Origin: Zygnema circumcarinatum SAG 698-1b
Taxonomy: Eukaryota > Plantae > Zygnematophyceae
NCBI GenBank assembly: GCA_037447605.1
Contig: CM074809.1
Location: forward strand, 548,689 to 612,688
DNA: 64,000 nucleotides
Direction: 5' to 3'
The notes under the pieces are model-generated. The model saw nothing but the letters and a program-made list of their open reading frames with translations, searched no databases and had not been told where the DNA came from. Of this stretch, positions 33,289-55,800 are shown one piece after another. The position numbers were made by a program, and so were the translations under genes. Positions within the stretch are counted from its first letter, which is position 1. Every line of letters begins with the position of its first letter.

Positions 33289-34484
33289 TTGATGATGATG
33301 TTGATGATGTGCTGTAATGTGATGGAGGATGCCTTGTGCTGCAGGGCTTTCTCAGCGCCTTGGACCTTGTGCTGCATCTGGGAGAAGGAAATGGTGTTTT
33401 GGAGCATTCGCTATCACTACCAGTAACGCATCTTATTGGGCACTCAAATGAAGGAATGTCTCTTTGGGTTATGGGCTCTGAAACATTGTAAGTTGTGTTC
33501 GTCCCATTCGCTCATTCGACGATCGTCTCCTTCTTCTTAGGCGTATGCATTCATGCTCACATTGACATTGACTATGTGCAAGTGAAAACTGGAGGAGTTC
33601 ACTCCTATCTCATTTGTGCGAAACGTTTCACCTTCAATATATGCACCAATTGTAGTTCAGATTCTGAAGGTTTACACGTTGTGTTACAGGTTGTTCGATG
33701 CAATGGAGCCCATGAGCAAAGGAGTGCACCGGATATTAGTGTCCACAACTCCCCCGGGCTCATCTCTCTCTAAGCTGCGACTCCTCTCACAGACTGATGT
33801 TGCCCGATTTCTGCTCCAATGCATCGATGACTTGGGCCCAGGAACAGGTCGGCCTTTACAGGAATTGGGTCTGGCCAGTACCATGCTGCCACCTGTCAGC
33901 GTCACGCCCTCCACCCCCATTCTGCAGGCTTGTCGGGTAATACGACAAATGGGAAAAGCCAATGCTGTGGCTGTTGTGTTGCCAAAGGAGGGGGAGGAGG
34001 AGGAGGAGGAGGGAGGAGCAGGCGGGAGAGTGGGAGGGAAACTCGTTGGGACTTTGTCTGCGAGTGATTTTCGAGGGGTCAACGAGTCGATGTTGGGGAG
34101 GTTGCCTCGGATGCAGGTGAGGCGAGGCCGCCCCTGAGGGAGGTAGGGAGGTAGGGAGGGAGGGAGGGAGGGAGGGAGGGGATCGTAGGAGAAGGAAGCA
34201 GAAGTTTGGCTTTGTGGGTTCTTTTTTTCTCAATTGGGTTCTTGTGCTTTGTTTCTGATCAGGTGATGGATTTCTTGAGAGAAGTTTCCGGTGTAGACGT
34301 GGTACGGCCTCCCGTGACTTGTCGGCCATCCGCTCCTCTAGCAGAGGTTCTGGCCAACGCCATCACAACAAAGGTCCACCGCGTGTGGATCACAGATCAA
34401 GGTGGATCCGCGATTGGTGTTGTCACGCTCACTGACATCATAAGTGCGGCGCGTGCGCTCATCTCGCAATCCGCAACTTCTTGA
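32316..34484 (+). CDS. CBS-domain protein (SnRK1 gamma-like / PV42-type), 5 exons
   Basis: Exons: ...LISIPDTSTVREALK | VMQDNNILAVPV...NRQYI | GFLSALDLVLHL...LIGHSNEGMSLW | ...MEPMSKGVHRILV...KLVGTLSASDFRG | ...KVHRVWITDQGGSAIGVVTLTDII. Confidence 0.87.
33221..33309. repeat. (GAT)n microsatellite in an intron
   Basis: About 29 units; produces the poly-M and poly-I ORFs. Confidence 0.97.
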
Positions 34485-35828
34485 ACCCAATTCAAAAAGA
34501 CGGCCTTTACGGTCTCCACTTGCAACTCTAAATTTTGCCTCGCAGGGAGAAACTACGGCGAGTGTGAGTGAGTCAAAGCGAAAAATATCAACTTAGGCAT
34601 GAATTTGTACAGCGGCTTGAGAGTAGGACAGATGTTGGTTGATATCTGTACGGTCCTTTACAAGAAGCAATCTCCTCTAAGGCTCGCTTTGTCCTTGGCG
34701 GATCTCATGATGCTTCATAAAAGGATTTCTGTAATTTCTATATGAGTTTAAGCTAACCATGTGAGCCATGCATGACGCTCGCAAGCTGTTACCATGTTGA
34801 GAATTCCATCCACAAATCGAGCGTTACGATGCCCGCAAACCCACACAGCGGAAAGTTGGACCCACCGAATTCAGCCCGTTTGCGGCATTCAAGGCTTGGC
34901 CAGCGTGGCATTCGTAGCCCACGTGGTTGCCACGTGGTTGCCACGTGGTATCGCGCAATTGGCACACGTGTTTTCTAGTCAACGTTTTGCAAGAGGGGGT
35001 TGTTCGGGAGAGATTTGAAACCTCTCTCGTTACGCCACGTCGTCTTGGCAATGGGCTTTATCTCATGGTCCACTTGCAAACAACCCGTGTCCTTCAAGCA
35101 CCTCAACCCTTCAAGCTACGTGAAAATAACACCCCACTACAAGCCCAACACTTCCCACTATCTTTTAGGCCCAAAGAAAGGTAGCCACTTTGCAATGCGA
35201 GTCACGATAAGGTTAATGACCTACCAAAACTATTCCCCTTTTATAATATGAGTATGTGATGTCACATTCTCATGTTGACAGGCCATACCAAGGCATATGA
35301 GGAAAATGGCATTGAACTCACATTGCCGAGGCCATCAAATGTACATGGACAAAAGCAGCATGGGGAACCACGAGGGACTGGTCGCCAAGGCAGCCCCTTG
35401 CAGGTGCATGCATTCAACCGCCAGCCATGCAATGCCCCGTAAACCTACGCTTCTGCACCGACCTATTTCTTAGCAGTCGTACAGTTCCGCCGCCCGGCCG
35501 TCGCCATGCAAGGCCTGACCTGGTCCCCGTCGCAGTGCACCTCGTCCAGCCGCCAAGTGGACCAACTAAAGGTCCGCGTGGCGTCTCCTCATTCGCGAAC
35601 GTACCTCACGTTTTTCGCGCGCTCCGCGCCTTGCACTCTCGCCGCGACCAATCACAGCACATCGACCAAAGTCCGTATCGCGCCAAATTCTTCGCGACTT
35701 CCGTATCATGAGCCGTAAAGTCAGTACAGTACTGCTTTCGTGCGAGTGTTCGTACAGCGCGTCCGCGCCTTCCCCCTCGACCAATACTGTACGGTCTCTA
35801 ACATGTACGCTCATACATTGGGACCACT

Positions 35829-36854: not shown

Positions 36855-39800
36855 TTAACCGACGCAGTTTGGCACCCTCGAATTGTTATAAAAGCACCCC
36901 GCCGGCCGCTTCACGCAGAGGACGAAGCCGACGGGCCACTGCACCGACCCAACGCACAGGCTCGTGGAGGGGCCCATGCACTGCTGCCACGTGGCCTGCG
37001 ATCTCGCCCCACAAAATCGCTGAATCACACTTCGACACGTGTCTGCCTTCTGCCACGTGTAATACGGTCGGCATGCGCCCGAAGGCACCACCTGATAGCC
37101 GGTGCAGATCTGCCCTCACAGCAACACACAAAAGAGCCCGTGATTTCCTTCACCGTCTTGTACCCTGTCAGTGACGGACCTACGTATTCAAGTTGGGGGG
37201 GCTTATCCCCCCCTCAGATTTTTGAATATTCAACTTTTTTTATTTTATCTGAAGTATTTTATGATGAAAGAAGGCTTAGCCGCCCCTCAACAAAAATCCT
37301 GGAATCAATAGGGTAACCGTGCTGCTGTATGATGTCAGGGAAGAAAGACGAGAGCCAGGTTGAGCCATGGTGGGTGCTAGTGAATCCCATGCATGCATGT
37401 ACACACATGGAGCTTGATGCGTGTACGCATGCATGCATGCATGGGATGAGCGTGCCGTACCCTTTGCCCCGCGTAGAGGTTCCCGCAGTTGATGCCGCGA
37501 TTGATCTCGAGGAAGTCGAAGCGCGACAAAGAGCGGGTCCTCCCGAGGATGGCGGCGCAGCTCTTGCTGCCGCGGTCGCTCTCGAGGACCGTGACGGCGC
37601 TCGTGCACACCTTCGTGTTGTCGGGGGACCCCGCCACCAGGCACACCTGCAGGGGGGGGACTCGCCCTCGCTCGTTCAGGGGAGGGGAGGGGAGGGGAGG
37701 GGAGGGGAGGGGAGGGGAGGGGAGGGGGACACAGGGCGGGTGGTATTAGCGCTTTTGGTGGTGTTCATAGCGTCCTACTGCACCTGCTGGCCAGGCTGAA
37801 TGCCGATGGGAGTGCCATCAGGCGCTCTGGTGACGTCACATACGAGTCCTGGATTCAGCTTGACGAGGGAGCCTACAGCGAGGCCGAAAGCGGTTTCAAT
37901 CGCCCAGCACGAGTCGTCCTGCATTCACACATTTGACCTCTGTCACTTAGAGTAGGTCAAGAACATCGTGAACAAAACGAACAAGATAAAGAAGCGAATT
38001 GCTTTCTTTGTCACAATGGAGGTGGGGTCTCCGAATGTTGACTGCGTCTGGTTGGTTTGGCTTGGCCATACAGATTGCAATTCGTACATCCTATTTTAAA
38101 AAGAGAAGCAGTTTCAGCATTTTCGGCATGAAGCGGACCTGCTGAATGCTGTAGAGAACCTTGCAGGTTTTTGCTGCTGTATTTCGAATGTTTAGGACAT
38201 CACCAATCCACAACGGATTACAAAGATCCTGCACATTGACATGAGAGAGAACACGAGAAGATAATAAATGAATAACAAATATAAAATGAATGAAGATGAA
38301 TAGTAGGTTGTGGCTCTGTCGAAGAACATCGATTGAAGAGAGTGAGCATGTGCAAAATCATCCTAATGAATTTTCCTTTCACGGCAGCAGCCACACGTAC
38401 CCGATTGGCCCTCGTGTTTTGACTTTTCAGTTGCATTATTGTTAATCCAGAAGCGTAAGCGATAATATAGCAATAATCTCCCGCTTTGACAGTGTACTTC
38501 TGCGGCGATGGCGAGTTCGCTTGCACCGCTGCACAGAAGCATTCAATATTTCAATATAGCACGCTACGAAGACCACGCAAGCTGAAAAGAGGCGGCAAGA
38601 AGAGAGGAAAGAGGTGTTCCCAAATTCAATATTTCCAGATAGAACCGAGAACTACATTGTCGTTGATGTGCGATGGGTCCAAAGTCCAAACAACGCGAAC
38701 ACACACACACACACATTGGAGCTGTGTGCAGTGCAAGTACTTACGCGGAACACAGAGCGGCCTGCCGTCACTGTTGACCGCACTGACATATCCTACAAAG
38801 CAGACGCAATGGTAGTAGCCGTTGTTCTCATTCACGCAGTTGCCCGCCCCGCACGGGTTCAAGCTTGTGGCGCTACACACGTCCACTGCCACAAGCGCGA
38901 TAGCGCAACAACGGACATTCGATAAAGGCACATGGAAGTTGGATCGGACGGCTTGTCTTAAAAAGGGTTGAGCCTAGTGGGCACTGAAGGTTAGAAGAAA
39001 GTTATACACAATGCAAAATCCGTATTGACTATCGGAACAATAACAAAAGCAAAGCGATTGTTTCTATGATATGCAAGTACTTACCGAGGGCGCAAGTCTG
39101 CGTGTTGTCGGTATTCTGAGCAGCGACATACTTGCTTGGGCATTGGCACGTGTAGGAACTCCCAGAGTTTATGCAGGTGCCCCTCCCACAAGGGTTGATT
39201 CTCACATTGCAGGGGTTGCCGTCAGGCGCTGCACATGCAGGGAGAGGGGCCTTGAGATAACCAAAGCGACTATCGGGACAAGGTTGTATGAGTTTCGTCA
39301 GCAAGCATGATCATGAGCTTTCAAGGCCGGGAGGAGCATATCATTTGCGAATTCAACTTTTTGTCATGAAAACTCCGTTTGTAACATCTGGTTGTCGTTG
39401 TCCGAAAAATAGTAACTTGGAATGTCCTATGGTTGCGTTGCTACGCAGCATCCAAACAGAGAGGCCGTACCACCAGCAAGGCTTCAATCCTCAATACCAA
39501 AAACAACTACAATAAGAATATTTGGAAGACCTTGTTTGAGGAACGTGCGCGAGCAAGTACTACTCACGGGCGATGACTGGGTAGAGGGCCGGCAGGGCGG
39601 TGACCCCGCAGATTCCCTGCTTGATGCGCGCGTACCCGCTGCGGCCCCACGCGGGGCCGAACGAGTTCCGTACGATCCAATACGCGACGCCGCTCTCGCT
39701 GCCGTACCCGACGAGGGCGAGGGCGTGGCTCAGCTGCGAGTCGTCCTCGCAGGCTCCCTCTGAATCGGTGAATATGTCCCACTTCACAGCGTTCACACAC

Positions 39801-42800
39801 ACACACAAGCAGAACAACAGGGTATGCTTTAAACATTTTTAAACATAATCTCAATGAAGTGATTCTCAATGAGCAGCACGGAATTCTATTTTATACTACA
39901 TACAGCCTGGTAATGCAAGCAGAAATGGTGACTTGAACCGTTCATTTGCCGGAGAAGCGACTTGTTCAAAAGGCATATAGCATATCCCTGATCGCTTTAA
40001 CCCGCATACCAGAGGTTCAAAGTAATTGCTATTTTCTCACCGTGTTCCACACCATGAGCTCCTGTGTGAGAGTTATGAACGCTGTGACGGGCTGTCGGCT
40101 GACAGCAGCTTTGAGGGCCAAAACATTGGACGCAGGAACCTGCTCATAGCTCAGCACATACACTGTCCGCTGTACGGACGCAGCCTGCTCAGCATCCGCA
40201 CAAGCTCAAAAAGTACATATCAGCACTCGCGGAGTCCCCGCCCCCAAAGTGACTTCAGGACAGACGCCTTCCATGCTCCAAACCCTTGAGATTGCGCAAA
40301 CCCTAAAACTCCTGAAGGCCACGATCTAACCTTCGACCGTGGCCAACGGAGAGGCTCGCATCAGCACGAGTGCACGCCACGACGAACCACCTCAATAAAG
40401 TCAGACATTGAAATTTGACACCTGACGAAGTCATGTTAAAAGTCAATGGACCCAATAAAGTCAACAAACACGACAGACGCATCCACAAAGGCCGCCACAT
40501 CTCAGCAAGTCACGTTCGCGTAAAGTCAAGTGTCTACGCCTACCCACCCGGCAGGCGGCCTCGGTGTTCGGTCCGTACGGTCCGTACGCCGTCGCCGTGG
40601 CGAGGCCGCCCGAGGCGGCCGCGAGCCAGTAGAGGACTCGCGCGGGCCACCCGCCGAGGCACGAACCGACCCCGGAGCAGTCCCGGACCTGCGCCTCCGC
40701 GAGCGCGACCGCCGCGGGGGGGGGCCCGCGCCACACGCCGTACGCGCCCTCCACCGCGGCCACCGCCGCGAACACCGCGCACGACCCTGCGGGATGCCGG
40801 GCAGGGGTTAGGGTTAAACGTGTGAGGGTGAAGGGTGTATGTTTGAGAGTTTAGGGTTAGGATGTGACGGTGGAGAGTGTAGAGTTTAGGGTTGAGGGTT
40901 GAGGATCGAGGGTTGAGGGTTTAGGCACCGCATGCGCCCTGGTCCTTGGCGGGGCCGAAGTACGGGGACCAGTCGACGGCGGGCGGGAGGGCGTCCGTCC
41001 AGCTCGCGTGCCGCGACAGCACGTTCAGGCGCGTCGTGCCGATATCGCTGCCTGCGGGCGGTGCCGCCAGCCCGGACGGGGCTGCACGCACAGGGCAGGG
41101 ACAGGGACGAGCGCTCAAGGGGCAGGGCAGGCGGTGCAAGCAACACTCCCGCCATGCTCACTCAAAGCCACGGGGACACTCACAGGCTAAGTTGTTGACA
41201 AGTGTACGGCGAAGAGGCAGGAAAAGCTGGTTGGCGTTGTCGGGAGTATCGCTAGACTTGCAATGCCACTGAATTAGATAATCGCCATTGCGGGACCCGG
41301 TAGCGTCGAGGCACAGGCCGGAGTTTACGTTCTGCCATTGAACGGAGAAATCCACAGAGCTGCTGTAGATGGGCATCCACAGCTGATTGTTACCGCCATT
41401 GCATGCTGCAACCCATCCGGCCACCCCATATAGACATCAAACACAGCGATTTGAGAATAATGCCAGCGTCTAAGACTAGTCAACAAGAATAAAAGAATCG
41501 TTATGAAACGCATCTGGACGATTCTTCCACTGCTCACGTGTTATCCTTTCCGTATCTTAAAGTTGTTTCAGGTCCTAGTGATCAACTCAAATATCCAGAT
41601 AGCGTAAACTCTGTATAGGACGAAGAGAGCTCAATTATGTCGTGTGTATTCATTTTAACCAGGCGGGAGCTCACTCCATATAAACAAGATTTCGCCAGCA
41701 TCTGTGCTCGACCATGGAACATCCAAACATGTTCCCCGCGTTTGCTGAAAAGAGTAAGCGCTTCCGACCTTGTTGAGAAACCACAGGGCTCCGACGTTAC
41801 CATCAAATCCGTTAGGATCTGCAATCGCAACAGAGCTTCTTTGTTCAGAAACAATGATTTATATGCGTCGAAAGCGAGCCAAGGAAATGCATGTAGAAGA
41901 AATCGCTTGCATGCTGCATGCTAAGGGGCGGAAAAAGTTGTCGCCACTTAAAGAGTGGTTCGAAAATATTGTGAAAGTTGCATTGGCAGAAACAGGTTAA
42001 GGATGTCTCAAGGGATAATCCCACTAAGCTGTGCGGCAATACGTACAGTCAGAAAACTGAACATTTGTTCCGATATCAGGACTGTTTCCCTCGGCAGACC
42101 ATGCGTTGAACGAATTCGAGGGCACGACGAGGAAGTTCCCTATTGAGGGATCGGTCCAGAGCTTCAGATTCACTGCAAGCAAAGCGACATGGAATTGATG
42201 TGTGTGCATGTGCACAGGAGCGAGTAAGGCAAAAAGCGGGCGAGGAGAGAAAAAGGGAGAGAGGGAGAAGGAAGGGGGAGAGGAGAAAAAGAGAGTTTGC
42301 GCACGGGAGAAAGTGGGGAAAGGAGGAAGAATTTAGTGAGCGAGAAAGCAAGGAGAACGAGAGACAAAAAAAAAGCCAAGTGCAACAGTGTGTCAAGTGA
42401 CTGTCATTTGAAACAACCAAAGTCATCGCAGTCTGCTCTTGAGGTGTGTATGTACTCAGGCCACAAAGAGTACCTGCTGAAGGCGACTGAGGTGGTGGAG
42501 GCGACGGAGGAGGTGGAGAGGGTAGATCTGCACCGTAGCGCACATCGCAACTTGTCACAAAGAAATATAGCAAGAATCGTCAACTTCCATTGCGCAAAAG
42601 TGTAATTCATGTGTGCGGATAGCCTCTTCCTGTGATTACAATAACCTTTTTACTCTCTCTCTTTTGAAGCAGAAAATCTTCAGTCGATTCCAACAATCAT
42701 GTGATCCCTCAAAGCATGAAGACGCCAATAGCACCTTCCTGCAGTCGCCAAAGCTCAATTTGCTAAAGAAATAGACTTCGACATTGCAGAGAGAAGGGAG

Positions 42801-44154
42801 GAGTGAGAAGCTCCCACCGCATCTTCCGAACGCTGTTTTACATCCAGACCCGCAATGGTCATTTGTGTAGCCGCACCAGTTATATTGAGAGCAGCATGAG
42901 TTACGGGGACAGAAGAGATTCACCGAGGGTCCGCAAGTACCTGAATTGGCAGACTTATGAAACATCAGCAACTCTGACAAGGTGTAAATTTTACGGTTTC
43001 AAAGGTCGGCTGAGACCAAAGCCTCCCCTGACTACTGCGAAGTATCCATCCACATATGCCTATGCAAGAAGATAGCTGATGGAATGTGAGACGGAAACGT
43101 ATCTCAAGGAAGTGAACTTCTCAACAGACGACTGCAAGAAGTTGCGGCTGCCTGACTGTGCAGCATCGCAGGAAAGCCGTGCCAAAGATTGTGATGGGCA
43201 TGCCTCTTGGGAACCCTAAAATTTTCTTCTTCGATTGAACAAACTTAGGCATAGCTATGCATGCACATCGACCCGCATAGGTCCTGAGTATAGCTTGAGA
43301 TGCATCAAATGTGTTCAGAACGCTGCAACACTCCGGCAAATTCACAGAACGTAAACGTCGGATGGTAAGCAGACGCTCAACACGAGCCATTGTCATTATT
43401 ATTTAGTCCTTATTATTAACTAATAGCTCGAAAAGTTGATTGGAAAGGTAATTACCATCTGTGGAGACTGCAGAGGTTTGCGGAACGCCGACGAAAAAAA
43501 GAACAACATAGTGGAAGATTTGTCAGTGTCTCGACTCCAATAGCAAGTGAATCGTGCGAAGGATTCATCCCGTTCATGCTTAATCTAATCAACTTCAACG
43601 GTCTGAAATGGGTTGTAGTACTTTTACGTCGCGCCGATACATGATTTGACAAGAATACCATGATTAACCGAACACCGAACGACATTCAATTTGTCATTTT
43701 GGAGTACAGACCCTTATTTTGTAAACGCTTCTATGCGAAGACCCATCTGTCCTTTAGTCCTGCGAGCACTGCTCTCAGCTCACTTCACACATGTGCAGCC
43801 TTCGTGGTTATTGTAAAGCAGAGGGGTCACTATACAAAACTTGCGATGGCACAGCCGTCGACCAAGTACCAAAAAGCAAAAGGACCTTCACCCTCGCCTG
43901 CATGCAGGACAAGACAGGACAGGACAGAACAGGGCAGGATAGGACAGAACAGGACAGGACAGGACAGAACAGGACAGAACAGGACAGCCTTTGGACGCGG
44001 TCGGTTGGTTGGTTGCCCTCGGCTCACTCACTGCATCGTCCGTACGCGGTCTGGCATCCTGCCAAGCAGTACTCGTCCGTGTAGCCGCACCAGTTGTACT
44101 GAGAGCAGCACGAAGTGTCGGGGCATCGCCGCTGCGCCGCGGACCCGCAACTGC
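36855..44154 (-). CDS. Modular protein copy 1: hevein x2 - Pro linker - ricin-B lectin - papain-family C1A protease - EGF x2 - LysM x4; 17 visible exons, first (signal) exon not located
   Basis: Hevein CCSQYNWCGYT (44032-44154 and ~42810-42940). Ricin NVNSGLCLDA and NNQLW. Protease LPPAVDW, DQGACGSC, SHALALVGYG, WIVRNSFG. EGF NPCG.G.C...Y.C.C. LysM YTVKAGDYCYIIA, DDSCWAIE...LVKLNPGL, FLEINRGINC. All checked junctions are GT-AG and phase-compatible. Confidence 0.85.
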
Positions 44155-44227
44155 CTGAAAGAAAACGAGCGACACAGCAACACGCAAATACGACACGCAC
44201 GCAAAAGAAAACAAACANNNNNNNNNN

Positions 44228-44400
44228 CCACGAAGGACTGGTCACAAAGGACCGAAACACAATAAAACGAAGCTAGGAGCGGAAAACTACGCCTAGGCAC
44301 AACAACGCAGCCCTAGAAGCAGCCGCGAAGGTCACCGATGTGAGGCACGTCGCGAGGAGGGAGCGGCGGAAGTCCACCAGTGAGTTTTCCGTTCTTAAGC
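44228..44400 (-). mobile_element. Dispersed repeat (probable retroelement 3' end) with a conserved ORF terminus
   Basis: Homologous segments at 8570-9330 (split by the solo LTR), ~35300-35400, ~36020-36170 (inverted) and 52530-52790. Confidence 0.55.
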
Positions 44401-46516
44401 CTTTTTAAAATCTGCCCGGCCGGGAAGGGCTGTTTTGATCCAAGAAAGGGGTGAATAACATTACCCTATTTTGAGGACCTTGTCCCCTCCCAAGATTAAG
44501 GCTATTGCCTTCAACTGGATCTCCACTTGCAGTCCAGTTTTGCTACTCAGGGAGGACTGAAGGTGACAAGTAAGTTGAGTCAGAGAGAAGGAGATCGACT
44601 TCGTTAAAAAAATCTACGACAGCTGTAATGAGGGCAGATGTGAAAATCTGTACATGTCGCGTTACAAGGAAAATTTTAACATATATGAATACAAAATAGT
44701 ACAGTACAACCACACTGCGCTTGATTTGAAAAGCCTACAGAGATTCTTATAAAGAATGGATTGCATTTTTCAAGCCTCCTCTGCTTCATACATCCAACAT
44801 CCATTAAAGACTAGAAACGAACAGGAAATATTGCTATCAATACCAGAACAGGTGACACCTACACTGATACTCATGCTGCCTCTGCAAAATCCTGAGATTG
44901 ATGCCTTATGATATTGACAATGGCACTACATCTAATACTGGCACTAACATCCACGCTGAACTAAAACCTGTCGGCGGTCTCAAGAGGCAGAGACCGGAAG
45001 CTCACAACCTACCTTCCCTACGACTACCCTCACACTACATTAACTTCTTCTCTGCACGGAAGCATTACACAGCTCGACAGTCAGTATTACGCTTTCATTG
45101 AGTCATCATGACATGCATAGAAACCATCGATGGCTTGGAAACCCTCAACTCCCGAAAGGCCGTGGTCCAAGGTCTTGCATGTCGATGCGTATTTAATGTG
45201 ATGCAAGTAGACAGTGAACTTTACCTGTACAGAAAAGGACCAGCCTCTTGAGACCCAATACTGGCTTATCTATAATAGAACCGTTTGCTCCCTGCCAAAA
45301 TGGAGTACAGCCTGAGAGAGTTTGTTAGAAGAAGGGGAGACAATGCCCCAGGAGTCATTTCTACACTGCATCGATCCTCAATACAAAACAGAGGGAGGGA
45401 GAGGGGGGGGGAGGGGAAGGGGGAGGGTGGGGGGAGGGCGAGCCTAGCCTTCCTTTCCAAAGCAATGGAGACCGAACAAGGACGGTAAAGCAAAAGGACA
45501 CAAGCAACGCGACGACACGCTACAAAGGGCTAAGAAGGAAGAATAGAGAAACGGGGGCCAGGGAGGGAAGAGGAAGGGAGGGAGGGAGAGAGGGAGGGAG
45601 GAGGGGCAATGGACGGGCGAAGGGAGGTCGAGTAGAAGCGGGGGATTGGGAGCCGGGGAGGGCGAACGGATAGAAGAAAGTCACGGGGGACGAGCAGAGA
45701 GGTAAGGAAGGGAGAGGGAACAAGAGAGGAAGCCGGAAGAAAATGGTAAAATATGAGTAAACTTCAAAAAAAATATCAAGAAATGGTGGAAAAGGTTGGA
45801 GGAGGGAAGGGGAAGAGGGGTGCGGACACAGCGGAGACCGAAAGCCCCCAGAGAAGAGCCGATAGAAAAGGAAAGAATCGACGCAAAACCGCTGCGCACC
45901 CTCAACCAAGACACCTTCATTACGACCCTTACAATGAATGTTGCAACCATGCATGAGAGCATGGAAGCACCATGCGGCGAAAACGCATGAATAAAATAAT
46001 CGGAAAATAGGTGTACTGAGCATAATTCATATTTTCCCCATTTAAATTTTTTGCGACTAACTTGACCAATTCAAATTGACCTCCTCGACCACTGGCTATG
46101 ACTAATGCATGCGTTTTATACACAAAGTACGAATATTACTCAATCCTTGGAATTTCACGCGTAATAAACGAAAAAAAGAGTAACGGTGCTTCTATGCATG
46201 AGAGTCTGATGAATTCAGAAGATCAACTTCATCTTGGTTAAGAAATATTTTTTTCCTTTCTTTGGTAATATTTAGTTGTTACTTCTATAAGTGACAGTTA
46301 CTCCCATACTCATGAACACATCGTGCACAGTTGCATTTGAATAAATCTGTGATAAAATTCGCTACTCAGAGACATACATGAAAAAATAAATATCACACAA
46401 ACATCTTGCCCCTTGAGTCCCACCCAATTTTCTCTCTTTAATCCCCAAAGCCCAAACCTCCCCAATCATAGAGAACGGGTCTCTCTCTAGAGGATTGGTC
46501 AGTCGCGCAGTAGTAT

Positions 46517-49500
46517 TTAGCCGACGCAGTTTGCCACCCTCGCATTGTTATAAAAGCACCCCGCCGGCCGCTTCACGCAGAGAACGGTGCCCGTGGGCCA
46601 TCCCGACCCGAGGCACAGGCTCGTGGAAGGGCCCATGCACTGCTGCCACGTGGCCTGAGATGTCGACCCGCAAAATCGCTGAATCACACCTCGACACGTG
46701 TCTGACTTCTGCCACTTGTAATAGGGTGTGCATGCGGCAGGAGGCACCACCTGGAAGCCGGTGCAGACCTGCCCTCCCCAGCAGCACACACAAACGAGCC
46801 CGTGATTTCCTTCCCCATCCTGTACCCTTTTGCTGCATAATGTCAGGGAAGAGAAGCAGGAGCCATGTGATTGGGTGCTTTGTGCATCCCATGCATGATC
46901 CGTGTACGCAATCATGCATGCATATGCATGGGATGTGCGTGCCGTACCGACTGCCCCACGTAGAGGTTCCCGCAGTTGATGCCGCGGTTGATTTCGAAGA
47001 AGTCGAAGCGCGCCAAGGAGCGCGTCCTCCCGAGGATGGAGGCACAGGTCTTGCTGCCGCGGTCGCTCTCGAGGACCACATCGGCGCTCGTGCACACCTT
47101 CGTGTTGTCGGGGGACCCCAACACCAGGCACACCTGCAGGGGGGGGACTCGCCCTCGCTCGTTCAAGGGAGGAGCGGGGAGGAAAGGGGGAGGNNNNNNN
47201 NNNGGGAGGGGAGATGAGGGGAGATGAGGCGGAGTCAGGGCTTGTGGTATTAGCGCTTTTGGGCGTGGTCATAGCGTCCTACTGCACCTGCTGGCCAGGC
47301 TGAATGCCGATGGGAGTGCCATCAGGCGCTCTGGTGACGTCACATACGAGTCCTGGATTCAGCTTCACGAGGGTGCCTATAGCGAGGCCGAAAGCGGTTT
47401 CAATCGCCCAGCACGAGTCGTCCTGCATTCACACATTTGACCTCTGTCACTTAGAGTAGGTAAAGAACATCGTGAACAGCAAGAACAAGATAAAGGAGTG
47501 ATTTGCATTCTTTATCAAAATGGAGGTGGGGTCTCCGACTGTTAAATGCGTCTGGTTGGACCGGTTTGGCTGTAGAATTATGCTTCCGTTCGTTCTATTT
47601 GAATGAAAGAAAGCATTGGGAACATTTTCGAAATGAGGCCGACCTGCTGAATGCTGTAGACAACCTTGCAATTTGTTGCTGCTTTATTTTGAACGTTTAG
47701 GACATCACCAATCAACAACGGATTGCAGAGATCCTGCACATTTACATGATAGCGAACACGAGAAGATAAAACGAATCAATGAGGTTGAATAAAAGGTTGT
47801 GAAGGACATCGATTGAAGAGAGTGAGCATAAGCAAAAATCACTCTAATGAAGTTTCCTTTCACGGCAGCAGCCACACGTACCCGATTGGCCCTCCTGTTT
47901 TGATTTTTCAGTCGCGTTATCGTTAATCCGTATGCGTAAGCGATAATATAGCAATTATCACCCGCATTGACGGTGTACGTCTGCGGAAATTGCGAGCTCG
48001 CTTGCACCGCTGCACATCAGAAGCATTCAATATTTCAACATAGCACGCGCTTCAATAGAACCACAGCTGAAAGTAGCGAATGAGGTGTTCCCAAATTCCC
48101 TATTTCCAGATAGAACCGAGAACTACATTGTCGTTCATGTGCGATGAGTCCAAAGTCCAAACAACGCGAACACACACACACACACATTGGAGCTGTGTGC
48201 AGTGCAAGTACTTACGCGGAACACAGAGCGGCCTGCCGTCACTGTTGACCGCGCTGACATATCCGACAAAGCAGACGCAATGGTAGTAGCCGTTGTTCTC
48301 ATTCACGCAGTTGCCCGCCCCGCACGGGTTCAAGCTTGTGGCGCTACACACGTCCACTGCCACAAGCGCGATAGCGCAACAACGGACATTCAATAAAGGC
48401 ACATGGAAGTTGAATCGGACGGCTTGCCTTTAAATAGGGTTGAGCCTAGTGAGCACTGAAGGTTTGAAGAAAGTTATACACAATGCAAAGTCTGTAATGA
48501 CTATCGGAACAATCGAAAAACGAAAGCAAAGCGATTGATTCAATGAAATGAGAGCAACTTACCGAGGGCGCAAGTCTGCGTGTTGTCGGTATTCTGAGCA
48601 GCGACATACTTGCTTGGGCATTGGCACGTGTAGGAACTCCCAGAGTTTATGCAGGTGCCTCTCCCAAAAGGGTTGATTCTCACATTGCAGGGGTTGCCGT
48701 CAGGCGCTGCACATGCAGGGAGAGGGGCCTTGAGATAAGCCCACGCGACTATCGGGACAACAACGGGACAGGAACACATCGTTCAACTTTTTGTCATTAA
48801 AGTCTGTTTGTAACAACTGGTTTTCGTTGTCCGAAGGATTGTAACTTGGCATACTCTATAGTTGTGTCGCTACGCAGCATCCAAACAGTGTACACAGAGG
48901 CTGTACCTCCTTGATAGCTTCTATATTCAATATAAACAATAACATTAACTTTGGAGAACGTGCGCGAGAAACTTACGAGAGATGACTGGGTAGAGGGCCG
49001 GCAGGGCGGTGACCCCGCAGATTCCCTGCTTGATGCGCGCGTACCCGCTGCGGCCCCACGCGGGGCCGAACGAGTTCCGTACGATCCAATACGCGACGCC
49101 GCTCTCGCTGCCGTACCCGACGAGGGCGAGGGCGTGGCTCAGCTGCGAGTCGTCCTCGCAGGCTCCCTCTGAATCGGTGAATATGTCCCACTTCACAGCG
49201 TTCACACACACACACAAGCAGACCAACAGGGTATGCTTTAAACATTTTTAAGCATAATCTCAATGAAGTGATTCTCAATGAGCAGCACGGAATTCTATTT
49301 TATACTACATACAGCCTGGTAATGCAAGCAGAAATGGTGACTTGAACCGTTCATTTGCCGGAGAAGCGACTTGTTCAAAAGGCATATAGCATATCCCTGA
49401 TCGCTTTAACCCGCATACCAGAGGTTCAAAGTAATTGCTATTTTCTCACCGTGTTCCACACCATGAGCTCCTGTGTGAGAGTTATGAACGCTGTGACGGG

Positions 49501-52500
49501 CTGTCGGCTGACAGCAGCTTTGAGGGCCAAAACATTGGACGCAGGAACCTGCTCATAGCTCAGCACATACACTGTCCGCTGTACGGACGCAGCCTGCTCA
49601 GCATCCGCACAAGCTCAAAAAGTACATATCAGCACTCGCGGAGTCCCCGCCCCCAAAGTGACTTCAGGACCGAAGCCTCCCTTCCATACTCTAAACCCTA
49701 GAGATTGCGCAAATCCTAAAAGTCCTGAAGCACGTCATCAAACTGTCAGCGTACGGATAGCCGTACAGCTGAGAGTTGTGGGATTTGGACGAAGTATACG
49801 AACTGTACGGATGTACGGACAATAGTACTGAACGCTTATTGTATGGCGGGTGGTGCGGTATACCACCGGTTGGCTAGGCCGAAGGGGCAGCCAATCGGGG
49901 GCCGTCACTTGGCAATTAGGGTTACAGGAATTGCAAGGAGGCAGCGCAGGAATGGCGAGCTCCCAGGCTCATTGGGCGGAGGACATGGCCTGCCGGGCAG
50001 CCAGCTAGCACAATACGGTGGCCAGGGCGGGAGCCAGGGCGGGATCCAGGGCGGGAGCCAGGGCGGGCGTCGAAGCGAGCAAGGCGCGGCAGACATGGAG
50101 GCTTATTGGAGCGGTGGGAGTGCGGCCGAATGAGGAGCTGCGGCTCCCTTCAGTGCTTAGGCATTTATAGTGCTTAGTGCTTAGCTTAGAATTACTCTCT
50201 GTAGTTTACAGTGTCTGACAGGCCTTGTGTAGGCTGTTTAGAGACTGTGTGTTGAACCGAGAGAAGGGGGGGGGTGTTTAAAGAGTAGTGCTAGGCTTAG
50301 TGCTGAATATACTCTATGTAATCATCCTGCCTTTTATTTAATGGAGTTTTAGGCCTGAGAGCTTTCTCCATATTTTTCAGCGTGTTTCCCTTGTGTGTTC
50401 TCTCAGTCTGTAATGTCTTCCGCTGTGAGTGAGGGCACATCCGAAGGGGGAACTAACTCTGACACAAACAGGCTCGCATCAGCACGAGTGCACGCGACGA
50501 CGAAATACCCCGGTAACGTTAAACCTTGAAATATGGCATCTGATCAAGTCATGTACAAAGTCACTGGACTCCATAAAGTCAATAAGACGACAGAGGGTGG
50601 GTTTCCATCAGCCCGTTATTCCGACGTGGCGTCGTAATGGAGGACGACCCATGGGTTCCATGAGGCCGTTTCCGCCAACGTGGCGCCGACGTGGCTGCCA
50701 CGTGGTAACGAGGCACCGTTCCACAGGATGCTGCTCCGGAGGTGGTGTAACGCCATTACGACCATTCGCGTGCCGCCGCGTGGCTACCAAAGATCCGCAA
50801 GCGTGCGACTGCCACGCTGGCCAACGGCGTTCTGATGGAACTCGTCGTTCCATCTGAAAACGGCATCCTACGTGGACCGTAACGAGCTCGTTACGAAACG
50901 GGCTGATGGAAACCCACCCAGAGTCGTATCCGCAAGGTCATCTCGAGCAGGCCGCCATATCATCATCTCATCAAAGTGACGTCCGGTAAAGTCACACGTG
51001 TGCGCGTGCCCACCCACCCGGCAGGCAGCCTCGGTGTACGGCCCGTACGTTCCGTACGCCGGCGCCGTGGCGAGGCCCTCCGAGGCCGCCGCGAGCCAGT
51101 CGAGGACGCGCGCGGGCCACCCGCCGAGGCACGAACCGGTCCCGGAGCAGTCTCGGACCTGCTCTTAAACAAGACTGTGAAATTAGCATTTGACTTTCAT
51201 GTTGGAATTTATGACTTTCTTGAAGTTGGGCGAAGAGAAGTAGGGTAAAGAAACTGCATTTGTCTCACGATGGCGATGCCATCAAATTTACNNNNNNNNN
51301 NGCCAGGGCGGGATCCAGGGCGGGAGCCAGGGCGGGCGTCGAAGCGAGCAAGGCGCGGCAGACATGGAGGCTTATTGGAGCGGTGGGAGTGCGGCCGAAT
51401 GAGGAGCTGCGGCTCCCTTCAGTGCTTAGGCATTTATAGTGCTTAGTGCTTAGCTTAGAATTACTCTCTGTAGTTTACAGTGTCTGACAGGCCTTGTGTA
51501 GGCTGTTTAGAGACTGTGTGTTGAACCGAGAGAAGGGGGGGGGTGTTTAAAGAGTAGTGCTAGGCTTAGTGCTGAATATACTCTATGTAATCATCCTGCC
51601 TTTTATTTAATGGAGTTTTAGGCCTGAGAGCTTTCTCCATATTTTTCAGCGTGTTTCCCTTGTGTGTTCTCTCAGTCTGTAATGTCTTCCGCTGTGAGTG
51701 AGGGCACATCCGAAGGGGGAACTAACTCTGACACAAACAGGCTCGCATCAGCACGAGTGCACGCGACGACGAAATACCCCGGTAACGTTAAACCTTGAAA
51801 TATGGCATCTGATCAAGTCATGTACAAAGTCACTGGACTCCATAAAGTCAATAAGACGACAGAGGGTGGGTTTCCATCAGCCCGTTATTCCGACGTGGCG
51901 TCGTAATGGAGGACGACCCATGGGTTCCATGAGGCCGTTTCCGCCAACGTGGCGCCGACGTGGCTGCCACGTGGTAACGAGGCACCGTTCCACAGGATGC
52001 TGCTCCGGAGGTGGTGTAACGCCATTACGACCATTCGCGTGCCGCCGCGTGGCTACCAAAGATCCGCAAGCGTGCGACTGCCACGCTGGCCAACGGCGTT
52101 CTGATGGAACTCGTCGTTCCATCTGAAAACGGCATCCTACGTGGACCGTAACGAGCTCGTTACGAAACGGGCTGATGGAAACCCACCCAGAGTCGTATCC
52201 GCAAGGTCATCTCGAGCAGGCCGCCATATCATCATCTCATCAAAGTGACGTCCGGTAAAGTCACACGTGTGCGCGTGCCCACCCACCCGGCAGGCAGCCT
52301 CGGTGTACGGCCCGTACGTTCCGTACGCCGGCGCCGTGGCGAGGCCCTCCGAGGCCGCCGCGAGCCAGTCGAGGACGCGCGCGGGCCACCCGCCGAGGCA
52401 CGAACCGGTCCCGGAGCAGTCTCGGACCTGCTCTTAAACAAGACTGTGAAATTAGCATTTGACTTTCATGTTGGAATTTATGACTTTCTTGAAGTTGGGC

Positions 52501-52786
52501 GAAGAGAAGTAGGGTAAAGAAACTGCATTTGTCTCACGATGGCGATGCCATCAAATTTACATGGAAAAAAAGAACGTGGGGAACTACAAAGAACCTGTCA
52601 CAAAAGACCTTAGGACTCATTGACAGAAAAAAAAGCAAGCTATGGGGTAATATCTACTTATAGGCTCAACCATGCTCCTCTAGAAACAGCCTCGAAGGTC
52701 GCCGATGTGGGGCACATTACGCAGAGGGAGAGGGGGGAGAGCACCGGACAGTCGCCAACAACCGTGGCACGTCGACTGAGAAGAGG

Positions 52787-52831
<45 letters not shown>

Positions 52832-55800
52832 NNNNNNNNNNGAGAGGGGGAGAGGGGGAGAGGGAGAGAAGGAGAGAAGGAGAGAGGGAGAGAGGGAGAG
52901 AGGGAGAGAGGGAGAGATGGGAGTAAGTAAGGTGTGTATGTAATGAGTGTGGAAATGGTGTGGCATTGATCTCACCCTCTAATGGTTGCCAACCATTCCA
53001 TTGGAATGGTTGGCAAGCATTCGATCATAGCTATTGGACCCAATGGTTACCAACCATTGAATTCAAGGTTACCAATGATTGGTAACCCACCAACATACAC
53101 ATACGACACAATCTTGAACCCACCAATGGTCCCGGATCATTGGAATGGTTGGCAACCATTGGATCCAATGGTTCCAAACCATTCGAATGGTTGTTTCGTT
53201 CTGGCGCTATTGGTTCGGAACTACTTTCATGTCTGCCAAGTATTGGTACCAAAGGTTGGCAATGGTTGGCAACCATTGGCGTAGAATGGTTCCAAACCAT
53301 TCGAATGGTTGTTTCAGTCCAGCGCCAATGGTTGGCAACCATTCGAATGGTTCCTCTTATGGACCGACCTGTAAATATGTTCAATTCCTGTAGCGCGTGC
53401 TACAACAGTGCTACAGCCACCATGGTGCATGCACCTAGTGTCTCAGCCGTACAGCTAATTGTACAGCCAGTTGTACGAACCGTACGGTCGCCCGTCCCTA
53501 GCGCCTCTGCGCTTGGACGGACGTGCGGCGACCTCTGACACCTCTGACAAGCGGCAGAGGTCGGCCAACCCGCGCCACATGGCGCTTCCCATTGGCTGGC
53601 CCCCCTCCCTGATCAACAAAGGGTTGGAGGGGGGCCGTCGTGGGGCCTCCACGGGGGGCTCACTCGGAGCTCGCCGGAAGTCATGTCCAGCATCGCATTG
53701 CATTCAGAGAAAGAGAGGAGGAAGGGCGGGCTGAGGAGCCTCCTCGCAGCAATGCCCGTGGAAAGGCCATGCCCACCTGCGCCTCCGCGAGCGCGACCGC
53801 CGCCGGGGGGGGGCCGCGCCACACGCCGTACGCGCCCTCCACCGCGGCCACCGCCGCGAACACCGCGCACGACCCTGGGGGATGCCGCGCAGGGGTTAGG
53901 GTTAAAGGTGTGAGGGTGAAGGGTTTATGTTTGAGAGTTTAGGATTAGGATGTGACGGTGGAGGGTGTAGAGTTTAGGGTTGAGGGTTGAGGATCGAGGG
54001 TTGAGGGTTTAGGCACCGCATGCGCCCTGGTCCTTGGCGGGGCCGAAGTACGGGGACCAGTCGACGGCGGGCGGGAGGGCTTCCGTCCAGCTCGCGTGCC
54101 GCGACAGCACGTTCAGGCGCGTTGTGCCGATATCGCTGCCTGCGGGCGGCGCCGCCAGCCCGGACGGGGCTGCACGCACGCGCGCACAGGGGCAGGGCAG
54201 GGACAGGGACGAGCGCTCAAGGGGCAGGGCAGGGCAGGGCAGGGGCAGGGACAGGGACAGGGACGAGCGCTCAAGGGACAGGGCAGGCGGTGCAAGCACC
54301 ACTCCCGCCATGCTCACTCAAAGCCACGGGGATACTCACAGGCTAAGTTGTTGACAAGTGCACGGCGAAGAGGCAGCCACAGCTGGTTGGCGTTGTCGGG
54401 AGCATCGGCAGACTTGCAATACCACTGCTTCGAATACTCTCCACTACGGTATCCGGTAGCGTCGAGGCACAGGCCGGAGTTCACGTTCTGCCATTGAACG
54501 GAGAAATCCACAGAGCTGCTGAAGATGGGCGTCCACAGCTGATTGCTACCGCCATGGCATGCTGCAGCCCATCCGGCCACCCCATATAGACATCAGACAC
54601 AGAGATCAGAGATTTGAAACTAGTCAGCCAGAGTCTAAGAAATGTCTATGGCATTCGGAGAATCGTTGAGAGAAGCATCTGGACAAATCTGCCGTTGCTC
54701 ACTTGCTATGCTTTCTTATTTTGAAGCTGTTTCAGGTCCAAATAGTCAACACAAGTATTCAGCTAACGTCGACTCTGTTTAGGACCACGAAAGCTCAATT
54801 ATGCAGTGTGCATTGGTTTTAACCAGGGTGGGAGCTCACTCAATATAACCAACAGTTCGCCAGCAGTCTTGCTACCGCCTGGGATGGCCAAACACGTTCC
54901 TCTCGTCTGCTGAAAGGAGTAAGCGCTTCCGACCTTGTTGAGGAACCACAGGGCTCCGACGTTACCATCAAATCTGTCAGGACCTGCAATCCGCAACAGA
55001 TTTTCTTTGTTCAGAAAGAGAGAACTATATGTGTATCTAAAGTAAGCCAAAAGAAATGCAACTCATGGAGAAAAAATCAGCAGTGCTTGGGGCGTGCATG
55101 CTGCATGCTACATGGGCTAAATAAATTGTAGCCACTTGAACAAGTTAGAAACTATTGTGAAAGTTGCATTGGCAGGAACAGGTTAAGGATATTTCAAGAT
55201 AATTCCACTCATCTGTACGGTAATACTTACAGTCAGAAAACTGAACGCGAACTCCCAAAGCAGAATTGTTGCCTTCGGCAAACCACACGTTGAACGAATT
55301 CGAGGGCACGATGAGAAAGTTCCCTATTGAGCGATCGGTCCAGAGCTTGAGATTCACTGCAAGCACAGAAACATGGAATTAATATGTGTACATTTGCACA
55401 GGGCGAGAATAATGTAGAGAGAGGACGAGGAGAGAGAAAGGGGGGCGAGAGGGAGAGAGCGGGAGAGAGAGGGAGAGAGAGAGGTAAAGAGAAAAGGTGT
55501 GCGAGATTGAGGGAGCAAGGAGAACGAGAGACAAGGAGAGAGCCAAGTGCATCAGTGGGTCAACTGACTATCATTTGAAACAACCGGAGTCAATGTAATG
55601 TGTTCTTCAGGTTTGTATGTACGCAGGCCACAAAAGAGTACCTGGCGGCGGAGGTGGTGGAGATGGTAGACCTGCACAATGAAGGTACACATGTTAACTT
55701 TCAAGCCTCAGGGCCGGATCCAATATTTTAGTTCAGGGGGATGAGATCCAAGATTTCAGTTGAGGGACGGCTGACTAAGTTGGGAAAAGAAAACTCATAT

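Follow-up and report, generated by a model that had tools for sequence, protein, structure and literature searches.

A predicted hevein–trefoil–papain–EGF–LysM protein of Zygnema circumcarinatum: a new variant in the head region of an unstudied family of algal proteases

The window analysed here is a stretch of 64,000 nucleotides from Zygnema circumcarinatum SAG 698-1b (assembly GCA_037447605.1, contig CM074809.1, positions 548,689 to 612,688 of the forward strand). On its minus strand, from 44154 down to 36855, lies a gene whose 17 GT-AG exons, as rebuilt here, splice into one open frame of 862 codons (table 1). At 44154 the model opens with a phase-1 acceptor, and it closes with a TAA stop at 36857–36855. 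Its product, which contains 56 cysteines, carries in order two hevein modules, an SPPPP linker, a ricin-B-type trefoil, a C1A papain domain, two EGF-like modules and four LysM-type modules, and then stops. It has no kinase and no membrane segment; the highest Kyte–Doolittle mean over 19 residues is 1.5, at the active-site helix. The original prediction had placed 17 in-frame GT-AG exons at 36855–44154, with neither membrane segment nor kinase, and the rebuilt model agrees with it in coordinates and strand. Its further claim, that three carbohydrate-binding families are grouped around a papain domain, is borne out by Pfam matches on single exons and by an end-to-end alignment with another species.

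Table 1. Exons of the gene model in order of transcription, and the neighbouring assembly gap. Positions are those of the window; scores are Pfam bit scores unless stated otherwise.
Feature	Position	Strand	Content	Evidence
assembly gap	44218..44227		10 N, in intron upstream of first modelled exon	missing signal-peptide exon expected in or beyond the gap
hev1	44032..44154	-	hevein/CBM18 module 1 (aa 1-41), phase 1 both ends	Chitin_bind_1 39.3 bits
hev2	42818..42940	-	hevein/CBM18 module 2 (aa 42-82), phase 1 both ends	Chitin_bind_1 35.4 bits
pro	42474..42527	-	Pro-rich linker, SPPPP twice (aa 83-100), phase 1 both ends	shorter counterpart in paralog B, same borders
ricA	42047..42172	-	conserved N-terminal part of the head	aligns with P0040, P0001, L001
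ricB	41675..41818	-	ricin-B-type beta-trefoil, part 1	RicinB_lectin_2 16.5 bits, E 0.014
ricC	41184..41405	-	beta-trefoil, part 2 (QLW, QLF motifs)	RicinB_lectin_2 31.4, Ricin_B_lectin 28.3 bits
papA	40929..41081	-	linker with SPSGL and LNxxSRHAS, then start of mature protease	oxyanion Gln codon 40941-40939
papB	40548..40786	-	Peptidase_C1 with catalytic Cys, motif CGSCA	Cys codon 40781-40779; 37.8 bits
papC	40041..40169	-	middle of papain domain	100% identical to paralog B
papD	39568..39781	-	Peptidase_C1, C-terminal lobe	His 39727-39725, Asn 39667-39665; 57.4 bits
egf1	39085..39228	-	six-cysteine EGF-like module 1, phase 1 both ends	EGF 19.7, hEGF 21.1 bits, both below cut-off
egf2	38745..38885	-	six-cysteine EGF-like module 2, phase 1 both ends	Cys pattern; aligns with EGF-annotated stretch of P0016/P0039
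lys1a	38401..38528	-	first half of LysM1	LysM 27.0 bits
lys1b	38139..38228	-	end of LysM1, start of LysM2	rebuilt model and homolog alignment
lys2	37784..37918	-	LysM2	LysM 26.3 bits
lys3	37461..37646	-	divergent LysM3	LysM 12.7 bits, below cut-off
lys4	36855..37091	-	Cys-rich, LysM-derived C-terminal module and TAA stop	profile matches 5bum, E 5e-4

If the protein is exported, where is its signal peptide? The first exon, which would encode it, is absent from the assembly: the model opens beside an assembly gap, and the locus lies among assembly gaps together with one evident gap-flanking duplication. In 44228–46520, the interval from the gap to the upstream gene, no exon was found that starts with ATG, encodes a hydrophobic stretch and ends in a phase-1 donor. 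Since the first exon is missing, secretion has to be judged from the relatives. Signal peptides were found in the tandem paralog B and in P0001 and P0045, and these, taken with the SPPPP linker, the 56 cysteines and the lack of a membrane segment, make it plausible that the product of the window gene is secreted.

Both hevein modules have eight cysteines and exceed the cut-off of Chitin_bind_1 (PF00187, 27.8 bits). In the first, the chitin-site pattern S-x-Y-x-W...Y is complete, its Ser, Tyr, Trp and Tyr all being present, and among solved structures the module comes closest to pokeweed lectin-C and wheat germ agglutinin; the second has His at the last position of the site. The linker that follows is of the extensin type, typical of wall-resident proteins, and Pro-rich stretches also lie upstream of the heads of P0040 and P0039. 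Exon ricA has no Pfam match, and the stretch homologous to it is modelled by AlphaFold at a pLDDT of only 30–40. The trefoil itself falls on the next two exons. Exon ricC passes the cut-off of RicinB_lectin_2 (PF14200, 25.6 bits) and lies just under that of Ricin_B_lectin (PF00652, 29 bits); the region of the homolog P0001 equivalent to ricB scores 43.1 bits with Ricin_B_lectin. The first repeat is degenerate, while QLW and QLF are kept. For the homologous head, an AlphaFold model of the core (pLDDT 78–87), whose Foldseek matches are ricin-B-like trefoil lectins, confirms the fold at the level of predicted structure.

Might the hevein exons belong to a gene of their own, a small lectin joined only on paper to a trefoil–protease–LysM gene? 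The hev1–hev2 intron is the longest of the model, at 1,091 bp, and paralog B works on paper without hevein modules. However, hev1, hev2 and the linker exon are all in phase 1 at both ends and have no start or stop of their own, the transcript contig P0040 unites a hevein-like module (below the Pfam cut-off), trefoil, papain, EGF and LysM in one ORF, and paralog B still carries, at the homologous place, a remnant of the final 20 nt of hev2. A division into two or more genes is scarcely credible. The frame, the intron phases, the constraint relative to the paralog and the transcripts of another species support the reading as one polypeptide.

Is the papain domain that of a working enzyme? Peptidase_C1 (PF00112, cut-off 20.7 bits) is matched on two separate exons, and homologs compared over the full domain reach 128–133 bits. 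The catalytic set is intact: Gln312, Cys318, His457 and Asn477 of the model correspond to Gln19, Cys25, His159 and Asn175 of papain, and neither paralog B nor any of four transcripts from another species has lost one of them. When aligned with the papain pattern, the six cysteines of its three disulfide pairs are all at the corresponding positions. The choice of acceptor for papD is backed by P0016 (WTSWNIFTD versus WNTWDIFTD); the acceptor of papC, at 40169, is a less certain border, with an alternative at 40204. C1A enzymes normally need an N-terminal prodomain of the inhibitory I29 type, with its ERFNIN and GNFD motifs, for folding and latency. No match to Inhibitor_I29 was obtained at E up to 0.1–1, in the exons or in the full homologs; the mature N-terminus is preceded by the trefoil and a 45-residue linker.

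The absence of the prodomain, and the replacement of Trp26 by Ala and of Trp177 by Phe beside the active site, would suit a papain fold that serves for binding or as a scaffold, the protein then being a multivalent lectin, an adhesin or a decoy. Relatives in Mesotaenium point the same way: in these the catalytic Cys is replaced by Ser, which means that not every member of the family depends on catalysis. On the other hand, the four catalytic residues are intact in every one of the copies and transcripts just named, and the papain domain is under stronger constraint than the lectin modules. We hold the loss of protease function in the window gene to be quite improbable, and its product to be a candidate cysteine protease.

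The remainder of the body is less uniform in its matches. The first EGF-like module falls short of the EGF cut-off (PF00008, 21.5 bits) and the second has no Pfam EGF match; the homologs P0005 and P0016 exceed that cut-off, at 28.4 and 25.1 bits. With the family profile of LysM3, the divergent third module, 4pxv was matched at E 1.5e-7 and 5bum at E 9e-7; these solved chains, each deposited under the name ‘Chitinase A’, we take to be LysM domains of plant chitinases. Exon lys4 aligns with the canonical fourth LysM of Mesotaenium proteins. It has no Pfam match of its own and its fold is not confirmed, the AlphaFold model being weak (pLDDT 65) and Foldseek giving no match. A fourth LysM followed by a stop had been predicted originally: the TAA stop after the C-terminal module stands, the module itself being divergent. 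Among the Pfam domains then expected, Chitin_bind_1, Peptidase_C1, RicinB_lectin_2 and, for the first two modules, LysM (PF01476, cut-off 20.9 bits) were recovered, whereas EGF, LysM3, LysM4 and PF00652 were below cut-off or without a match.

How does the gene compare with its tandem paralog? Of the 13 exons compared, 12 have exactly the same length, the exception being lys4 with a difference of 3 nt, and no splice site has been lost, whereas the introns have accumulated 54 indels over 2.2 kb. Ka/Ks has an overall value of 0.50; for the papain domain it is 0.31 and for the EGF modules 0.09, and the binding modules exceed both the protease and the EGF modules in this ratio. Exon papD is 99.1% identical between the two copies, its two differences lying in the last four bases, and the intron between papC and papD is 99.2% identical.

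Such near-identity over papC, papD and their intron suggests gene conversion, and raises the question of whether this copy is alive at all. It could be a 5′-truncated member of the array, without promoter or signal exon, whose frame is still open through recency or conversion. Neither a signal exon nor a homolog of the 5′ region of B was found upstream, and three probable RNA runs of the species contain almost none of the gene's words. Yet exon 1 is expected in the very intron that contains the run of 10 N, none of the 32 splice dinucleotides is damaged, and the 862 codons are free of stops. The hevein exons, moreover, have no donor copy in B from which they could have been repaired, and still show a Ka/Ks of about 0.16 between hev1 and hev2, whose silent sites are almost saturated. 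In one run, guessed to be RNA, 17% of the stretch's words occur, a figure below the exonic share of about 38%. A dead or broken copy is improbable.

Is the architecture peculiar to this gene? The product of splicing can be aligned over its whole length, at about 42% identity, with transcript contigs of another alga that each hold a single ORF, the scores being 570 bits with P0040, 577 with P0039 and 497 with P0016 (these, and P0001, are Logan transcript proteins). The three contigs have the same domain order and bear adapter and poly-A/T ends; the C-terminal end of P0016 and P0039 falls on the same residue as that of the window gene. A profile search found further members in Mesotaenium endlicherianum, and the papain–EGF–LysM body is present in both Mesotaenium and Closterium. 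All these Zygnematophyceae relatives (P0040, P0039, P0016, P0001; ME000065S09001, ME000065S09004; Closterium sp. CAI5502628.1) have the same body in the same order, have the linker motifs SPSGL and LNxFSRHAS in common with the window gene and, like it, lack an I29 prodomain. It is the heads that differ. Against the two canonical hevein modules of the window gene, P0040 shows a single weak one, and the Mesotaenium and Closterium members have LRR heads; hevein and trefoil are combined in one other species, that of P0040. On the sequence evidence, then, the window gene belongs to a lineage-wide but unnamed Zygnematophyceae family of head–papain–EGF–LysM proteins, of which we know of no characterised member. 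It is not unique; what it adds to this unstudied algal protease family is a new variant of the head. The original statement that no characterised protein with this architecture is known is strictly true; the papain–EGF–LysM body is nevertheless recurrent and visible in the databases in Zygnematophyceae, and mosaics of C1A with LysM, and in part EGF, were catalogued for green algae in 2019 (PMC6362431).

How might such a protein work? We think it probable that this is one real gene, 5′-incomplete as assembled, and that its product is most likely an extracellular, glycan-tethered cysteine protease that acts on GlcNAc-rich microbial walls as a defence effector. A constant body of prodomain-less C1A papain, two EGF-like and four LysM modules would be combined with variable N-terminal heads exchanged through phase-1 exons, the head in this case being two canonical hevein (CBM18) modules, an extensin-type SPPPP stalk and a ricin-B-type beta-trefoil. 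Entering the secretory pathway by way of the short signal exon that the assembly lacks, the protein would be Hyp-glycosylated on its stalk. The hevein and LysM modules would hold it on GlcNAc polymers (chitin, chitin-like or peptidoglycan-type glycans), the trefoil would provide a second glycan specificity, and the Cys-His-Asn protease would cut proteins in or beside the glycan surface.

The same protein could, however, be directed at the alga itself, anchored in its glycoprotein-rich matrix and employed in wall remodelling, cell separation or conjugation; nothing in the analysis separates the two targets. The extensin-type linker would fit such a role, the alga's own glycans could be ligands of the trefoil and LysM modules, and the family is specific to conjugating algae in the searches made. 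A chitin-binding protease of Volvox, reportedly induced by wounding and by pheromone, also ties enzymes of this kind to developmental cues. But the canonical chitin-site residues of the hevein modules point to GlcNAc polymers, and to our knowledge these have not been described as wall components of these algae; and the varied heads (hevein, LRR, trefoil), the tandem duplication and the higher Ka/Ks of the binding modules are more like a recognition repertoire. A self-directed wall enzyme is possible but unlikely, and the microbial wall remains the target that we favour.

Which known proteins does the predicted protease resemble? Amon, Haas and Sumper are said to have described, in 1998 (Plant Cell 10:781), the Volvox carteri enzyme, a secreted cysteine protease induced by wounding and by the sex pheromone, in which chitin-binding repeats are joined through a Hyp-rich, extensin-like spacer and for which a role in defence was suggested. 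Volvox is a chlorophyte, not a streptophyte, and the binding modules of its protease are reportedly N-terminal, with no hevein, trefoil or EGF. Class I chitinases (hevein and GH19) and the chitinase-A of ferns and horsetails (LysM and GH18; PDB 4pxv, 5bum), whose solved chains are those matched by the LysM3 and LysM4 profiles, use the same two chitin-binding families to tether a secreted hydrolase, but their catalytic module is a glycosidase rather than a protease, and hevein and LysM are not known to occur together in one such protein.

The C1A-peptidase/LysM mosaics of Chlamydomonas reinhardtii, known from the catalogue of Van Holle and Van Damme (2019, Suppl. Table 3; PMC6362431), join C1A to two or three LysM modules and, in some cases, to EGF-like and further lectin-type domains. 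According to the authors such combinations were not retained in vascular plants (PMC6362431). As partner domains, the passages on these mosaics give SRCR, galactose-binding-like, C-type lectin, WSC and fucolectin domains, and list no hevein or ricin-B partner (PMC6362431). In fungi, the chimerolectins Marasmius oreades agglutinin (MOA) and PSL1a fuse a ricin-B-type trefoil to a papain-like cysteine protease, the lectin aiming the protein and the protease adding to its toxicity against predators (PMC4717121, PMC5256987). MOA is among the Foldseek matches of the homolog's head, but hevein, EGF and LysM are all lacking from it, its location in fungi is the cytoplasm and its origin is unrelated. 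Its protease is a small dimerisation domain that depends on calcium, and is not known as a C1A enzyme. The likeness to MOA and PSL1a is an analogy of design, not kinship.

As the sister group of land plants, the conjugating green algae have extracellular recognition proteins that bear on the origin of plant immunity and wall sensing. Land plants carry LysM and hevein modules on receptors and chitinases; in the family of the window gene these modules are wired to a papain-type protease, with heads that appear to be exchanged like cassettes. One could imagine a combinatorial repertoire of ‘pattern-recognition proteases’, in which a protease–EGF–LysM chassis acquires swappable heads (hevein, ricin-B trefoil, LRR and others) by phase-1 exon shuffling and tandem duplication, and which served as an extracellular immune effector or sensor that predated vascular plants and was lost in them; this is speculative, and we think it doubtful. 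The window gene is a well-supported prediction within an unstudied family, and its function, too, is a predicted one; were the protein active and guided by glycans, it would represent a lost branch of defence in the plant lineage and a natural example of lectin-targeted proteolysis. On a variant of the repertoire reading, itself speculative, the trefoil would have a second part to play. Fungal trefoil inhibitors act on papain-like proteases, and by analogy the beta-trefoil, standing in place of the missing I29 prodomain, might double as a built-in inhibitor or chaperone.

If the modules of gene A, the gene studied here, are recognizable in stop-free segments of three different minus-strand frames, do they belong to one polypeptide? 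All 17 rebuilt exons have AG/GT borders, and spliced together they form an open frame of 862 codons. It was originally predicted that 17 GT–AG exons would join in frame into one protein, that a stop would close it after the fourth LysM-like module and that it would lack a transmembrane segment. The rebuilt model matches that exon count and those coordinates, ends at a TAA (36857–36855) directly after the fourth module and contains no membrane segment. Ten of the 16 introns are in phase 1 and six in phase 0. Every exon that holds a whole module (the two hevein exons, the Pro-rich linker, the three head exons and the two EGF exons) is bounded by phase 1 on both sides, so that adding, losing or skipping one leaves the frame intact. 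One border is uncertain: the acceptor of exon papC may lie at 40169 or, alternatively, at 40204; use of the latter would lengthen the protein by 13 residues, 12 of them through the shifted acceptor and one through a matching shift of the papB donor. The chosen papB donor is supported by P0001, a homologous transcript protein, in which a retained intron begins exactly behind the same Cys-Arg. Several introns of gene A open with an extended motif, GTAAGTACTTGC (minus strand, 39070–39084, 38730–38744 and 39550–39567), in one case as GTGAGTAGTACTTGC; the motif exceeds the usual donor consensus in length. Among sequencing runs compared with the stretch, one guessed to be RNA contained 17% of the words, and four of unknown type contained 61–66%.

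We aligned the spliced product with proteins encoded by another alga's transcript contigs (runs SRR8128902-08; contigs with adapters and poly-A/T ends), and the match extends from end to end. P0040 (812 aa) spans model residues 53–860 at 41.8% identity, P0039 (744 aa) residues 116–862 and P0016 (664 aa) residues 192–862; the final residue of the model is also the end of P0016 and P0039. A single frame of P0040 encodes Pro-rich sequence, a module resembling hevein (below the Pfam cut-off), the trefoil, the papain domain, two EGF and four LysM modules. The joined architecture is thus present as mRNA in a second species. The tandem paralog B keeps all the splice sites of gene A, and its exon lengths agree exactly in 12 of the 13 compared, lys4 differing by 3 nt. 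Across 2.2 kb of intron the pair differs by 54 indels, and 47 of these have lengths not divisible by three. Overall, the two genes differ with a Ka/Ks of 0.50; the value falls to 0.31 for the papain domain and 0.09 for the EGF pair, and lies at 0.50–0.56 for the trefoil and LysM parts. The hevein exons have no counterpart in paralog B; compared with one another, hev1 and hev2 give a Ka/Ks of about 0.16 with silent sites near saturation, which argues that both have remained coding for a long time. Transcript alignment, conservation of splice sites and exon lengths, and Ka/Ks all support the predicted gene model, and at the level of sequence the architecture is confirmed.

How typical are the individual modules? 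Pfam was run on single exon pieces (cut-offs: Chitin_bind_1 27.8, RicinB_lectin_2 25.6, Ricin_B_lectin 29, EGF 21.5, LysM 20.9 bits). Of the families expected, Chitin_bind_1 (two matches, 39.3 and 35.4 bits), RicinB_lectin_2 (31.4 bits), Peptidase_C1 (two exons, 37.8 and 57.4 bits) and LysM (two exons, 27.0 and 26.3 bits) were found, whereas Ricin_B_lectin (28.3 bits) and EGF (weak, one exon, 19.7 bits) fell below their cut-offs. Each hevein module contains the eight-cysteine knot, and its chitin-site residues are present as Ser, Tyr, Trp and a last position held by Tyr or His. Among solved structures, pokeweed lectin-C, wheat germ agglutinin and hevein itself match the pair best. By its sequence, QLW and QLF motifs included, the trefoil belongs to the ricin-B type. 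For the homologous head in P0040, AlphaFold predicts a β-rich core with confidence (pLDDT 78–87) but models the equivalent of exon ricA poorly; every Foldseek match of this model is a β-trefoil (CdtA, ThreeFoil, MOA, MPL and an Entamoeba lectin). Of the LysM modules, the first two are canonical. LysM3 is recognized only by a family profile, through the solved chains 4pxv and 5bum (E 1.5e-7 and 9e-7), both deposited as ‘Chitinase A’ and representing LysM domains of fern and horsetail chitinases. LysM4, a derived module rich in Cys, has a profile match at E 5e-4 and aligns to the canonical fourth LysM in the Mesotaenium proteins described below; its AlphaFold pLDDT is only 65 and Foldseek found no match to that model.

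The protease of gene A keeps Gln312, Cys318, His457 and Asn477, together with all six papain disulfide cysteines. Its nearest solved relatives, in a search run on a homologue, are ananain, ficin, bromelain, actinidin and cathepsin H. Papain-like enzymes commonly carry an I29 prodomain, with roles in folding and latency; a profile search gave no match to it. The trefoil is joined to the mature protease N-terminus by 45 linker residues, which include two motifs found across the family, SPSGL and LNxFSRHAS.

How unusual is this protein? Among 1.84 billion representatives, a search with exon papB found only 30 relatives, the best a trefoil–papain fragment at 49% identity; with a best match as distant as this, the product of gene A itself must be absent from the library. 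A search with the head of P0040 alone returned only P0040. Profile searches located the same papain–EGF–LysM body in Mesotaenium endlicherianum, where it carries LRR heads (ME000065S09001 and ME000065S09004, P0045 and P0046), and also in the Closterium protein CAI5502628.1; all these family members are unnamed. The Mesotaenium members have Ser in place of the catalytic Cys, reading CGASWAF where papain has CGSCWAF, and could be either serine-nucleophile variants or inactive proteases. In Chlamydomonas, C1A + LysM mosaics, some of them including EGF and additional lectin domains, have been catalogued by Van Holle and Van Damme (2019, PMC6362431), according to whom vascular plants did not retain such combinations. 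A literature search for Zygnematophyceae, LysM and papain together found nothing. The claim that no characterized protein has this architecture stands in so far as the relatives are unnamed and unstudied, but the family is already visible and the head is seen in at least one other species. We conclude from these comparisons that the hevein–hevein–trefoil head on a papain–EGF–LysM body is a new variant, present in at least one other species, and no one-off. As a new head variant of an unstudied family gene A is well supported, its N-terminus and expression being predicted.

Is the protein secreted? The model opens at a phase-1 acceptor (44154) behind a typical pyrimidine tract, with a 10-N assembly gap upstream (44218–44227). 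One alternative, that the T-rich sequence directly before 44154 encodes a signal peptide running on into hev1, was considered and rejected. We take this sequence as an intron end, since it is a pyrimidine tract followed by CAG, the phase-1 border fits the donor of paralog B's signal exon and no ATG occurs in it on the near side of the gap. That signal exon (55 nt, 56327–56273, MAALLLWALLVALW...) ends in phase 1, exactly what the hev1 acceptor needs. A search from the gap to the stop codon of the upstream paralog (44228–46520) for a hydrophobic exon that starts with ATG and has a phase-1 donor found none, and nothing there resembles the 5′ regions of paralog B or of the 106-codon mini-gene, including by local blastn of 44228–46490 against the window. 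Exon 1 therefore lies within the gap or has been lost. Secretion is plausible, given the signal peptides of paralog B, P0001 and P0045, the two extensin-type SPPPP motifs, the 56 cysteines and the lack of a membrane segment.

What might such a protein do? On our best reading it would be a protease outside the cell, docked by its hevein and LysM modules on GlcNAc-rich glycan surfaces; the trefoil would contribute a second specificity, and the protease would cleave proteins at that surface. The main rival places its action in the alga's own wall. We favour a microbial target, to which the canonical chitin-site residues, the variation of heads among paralogs and the faster evolution of the binding modules than of the protease and EGF core all point. 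The original interpretation, a secreted protease docking on microbial walls or on the alga's own matrix, is partly supported. The fungal chimerolectin MOA combines a ricin-B lectin with a papain-like protease and is toxic to predators (PMC4717121); its likeness to gene A is an analogy of design, without kinship.

Features of the array and its surroundings (window positions)
Feature	Position	Strand	Remarks
Gene A	44154–36855	minus	hevein ×2, SPPPP linker, trefoil, papain, EGF ×2, LysM ×4
Paralog B	46517–56327	minus	same body, every splice site kept
Exact 1,259-bp repeat	50033–51291 and 51302–52560		flanks N gap 51292–51301; doubles one protease exon of B
Single-exon ORF, 106 codons	58220–58537	minus	signal peptide joined directly to last LysM-derived module
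Neighbouring gene, CBS-domain-like sequence	about 33600–34500	plus	unrelated to protease array

Of the hevein exons, paralog B retains only the last roughly 20 nt of one (about 56047–56066), flanked by satellite repeats; since all junctions there are in phase 1, it reads in frame without them. In its first EGF module one cysteine has been replaced by Phe, and an extra intron (52428–53776) splits, between CAG and GT, the catalytic-cysteine exon that is continuous in gene A. The 1,259-bp repeat looks like a gap-flanking assembly artefact, which makes the assembly of the tandem array unreliable. Similar sequence, with matching translated stretches, lies beside two different N gaps (44228–44470 and about 52683–52760) and is possibly an assembly-breaking repeat. 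The 5′ flank of the 106-codon ORF resembles that of paralog B, and unequal exchange within the array seems to have produced the ORF.
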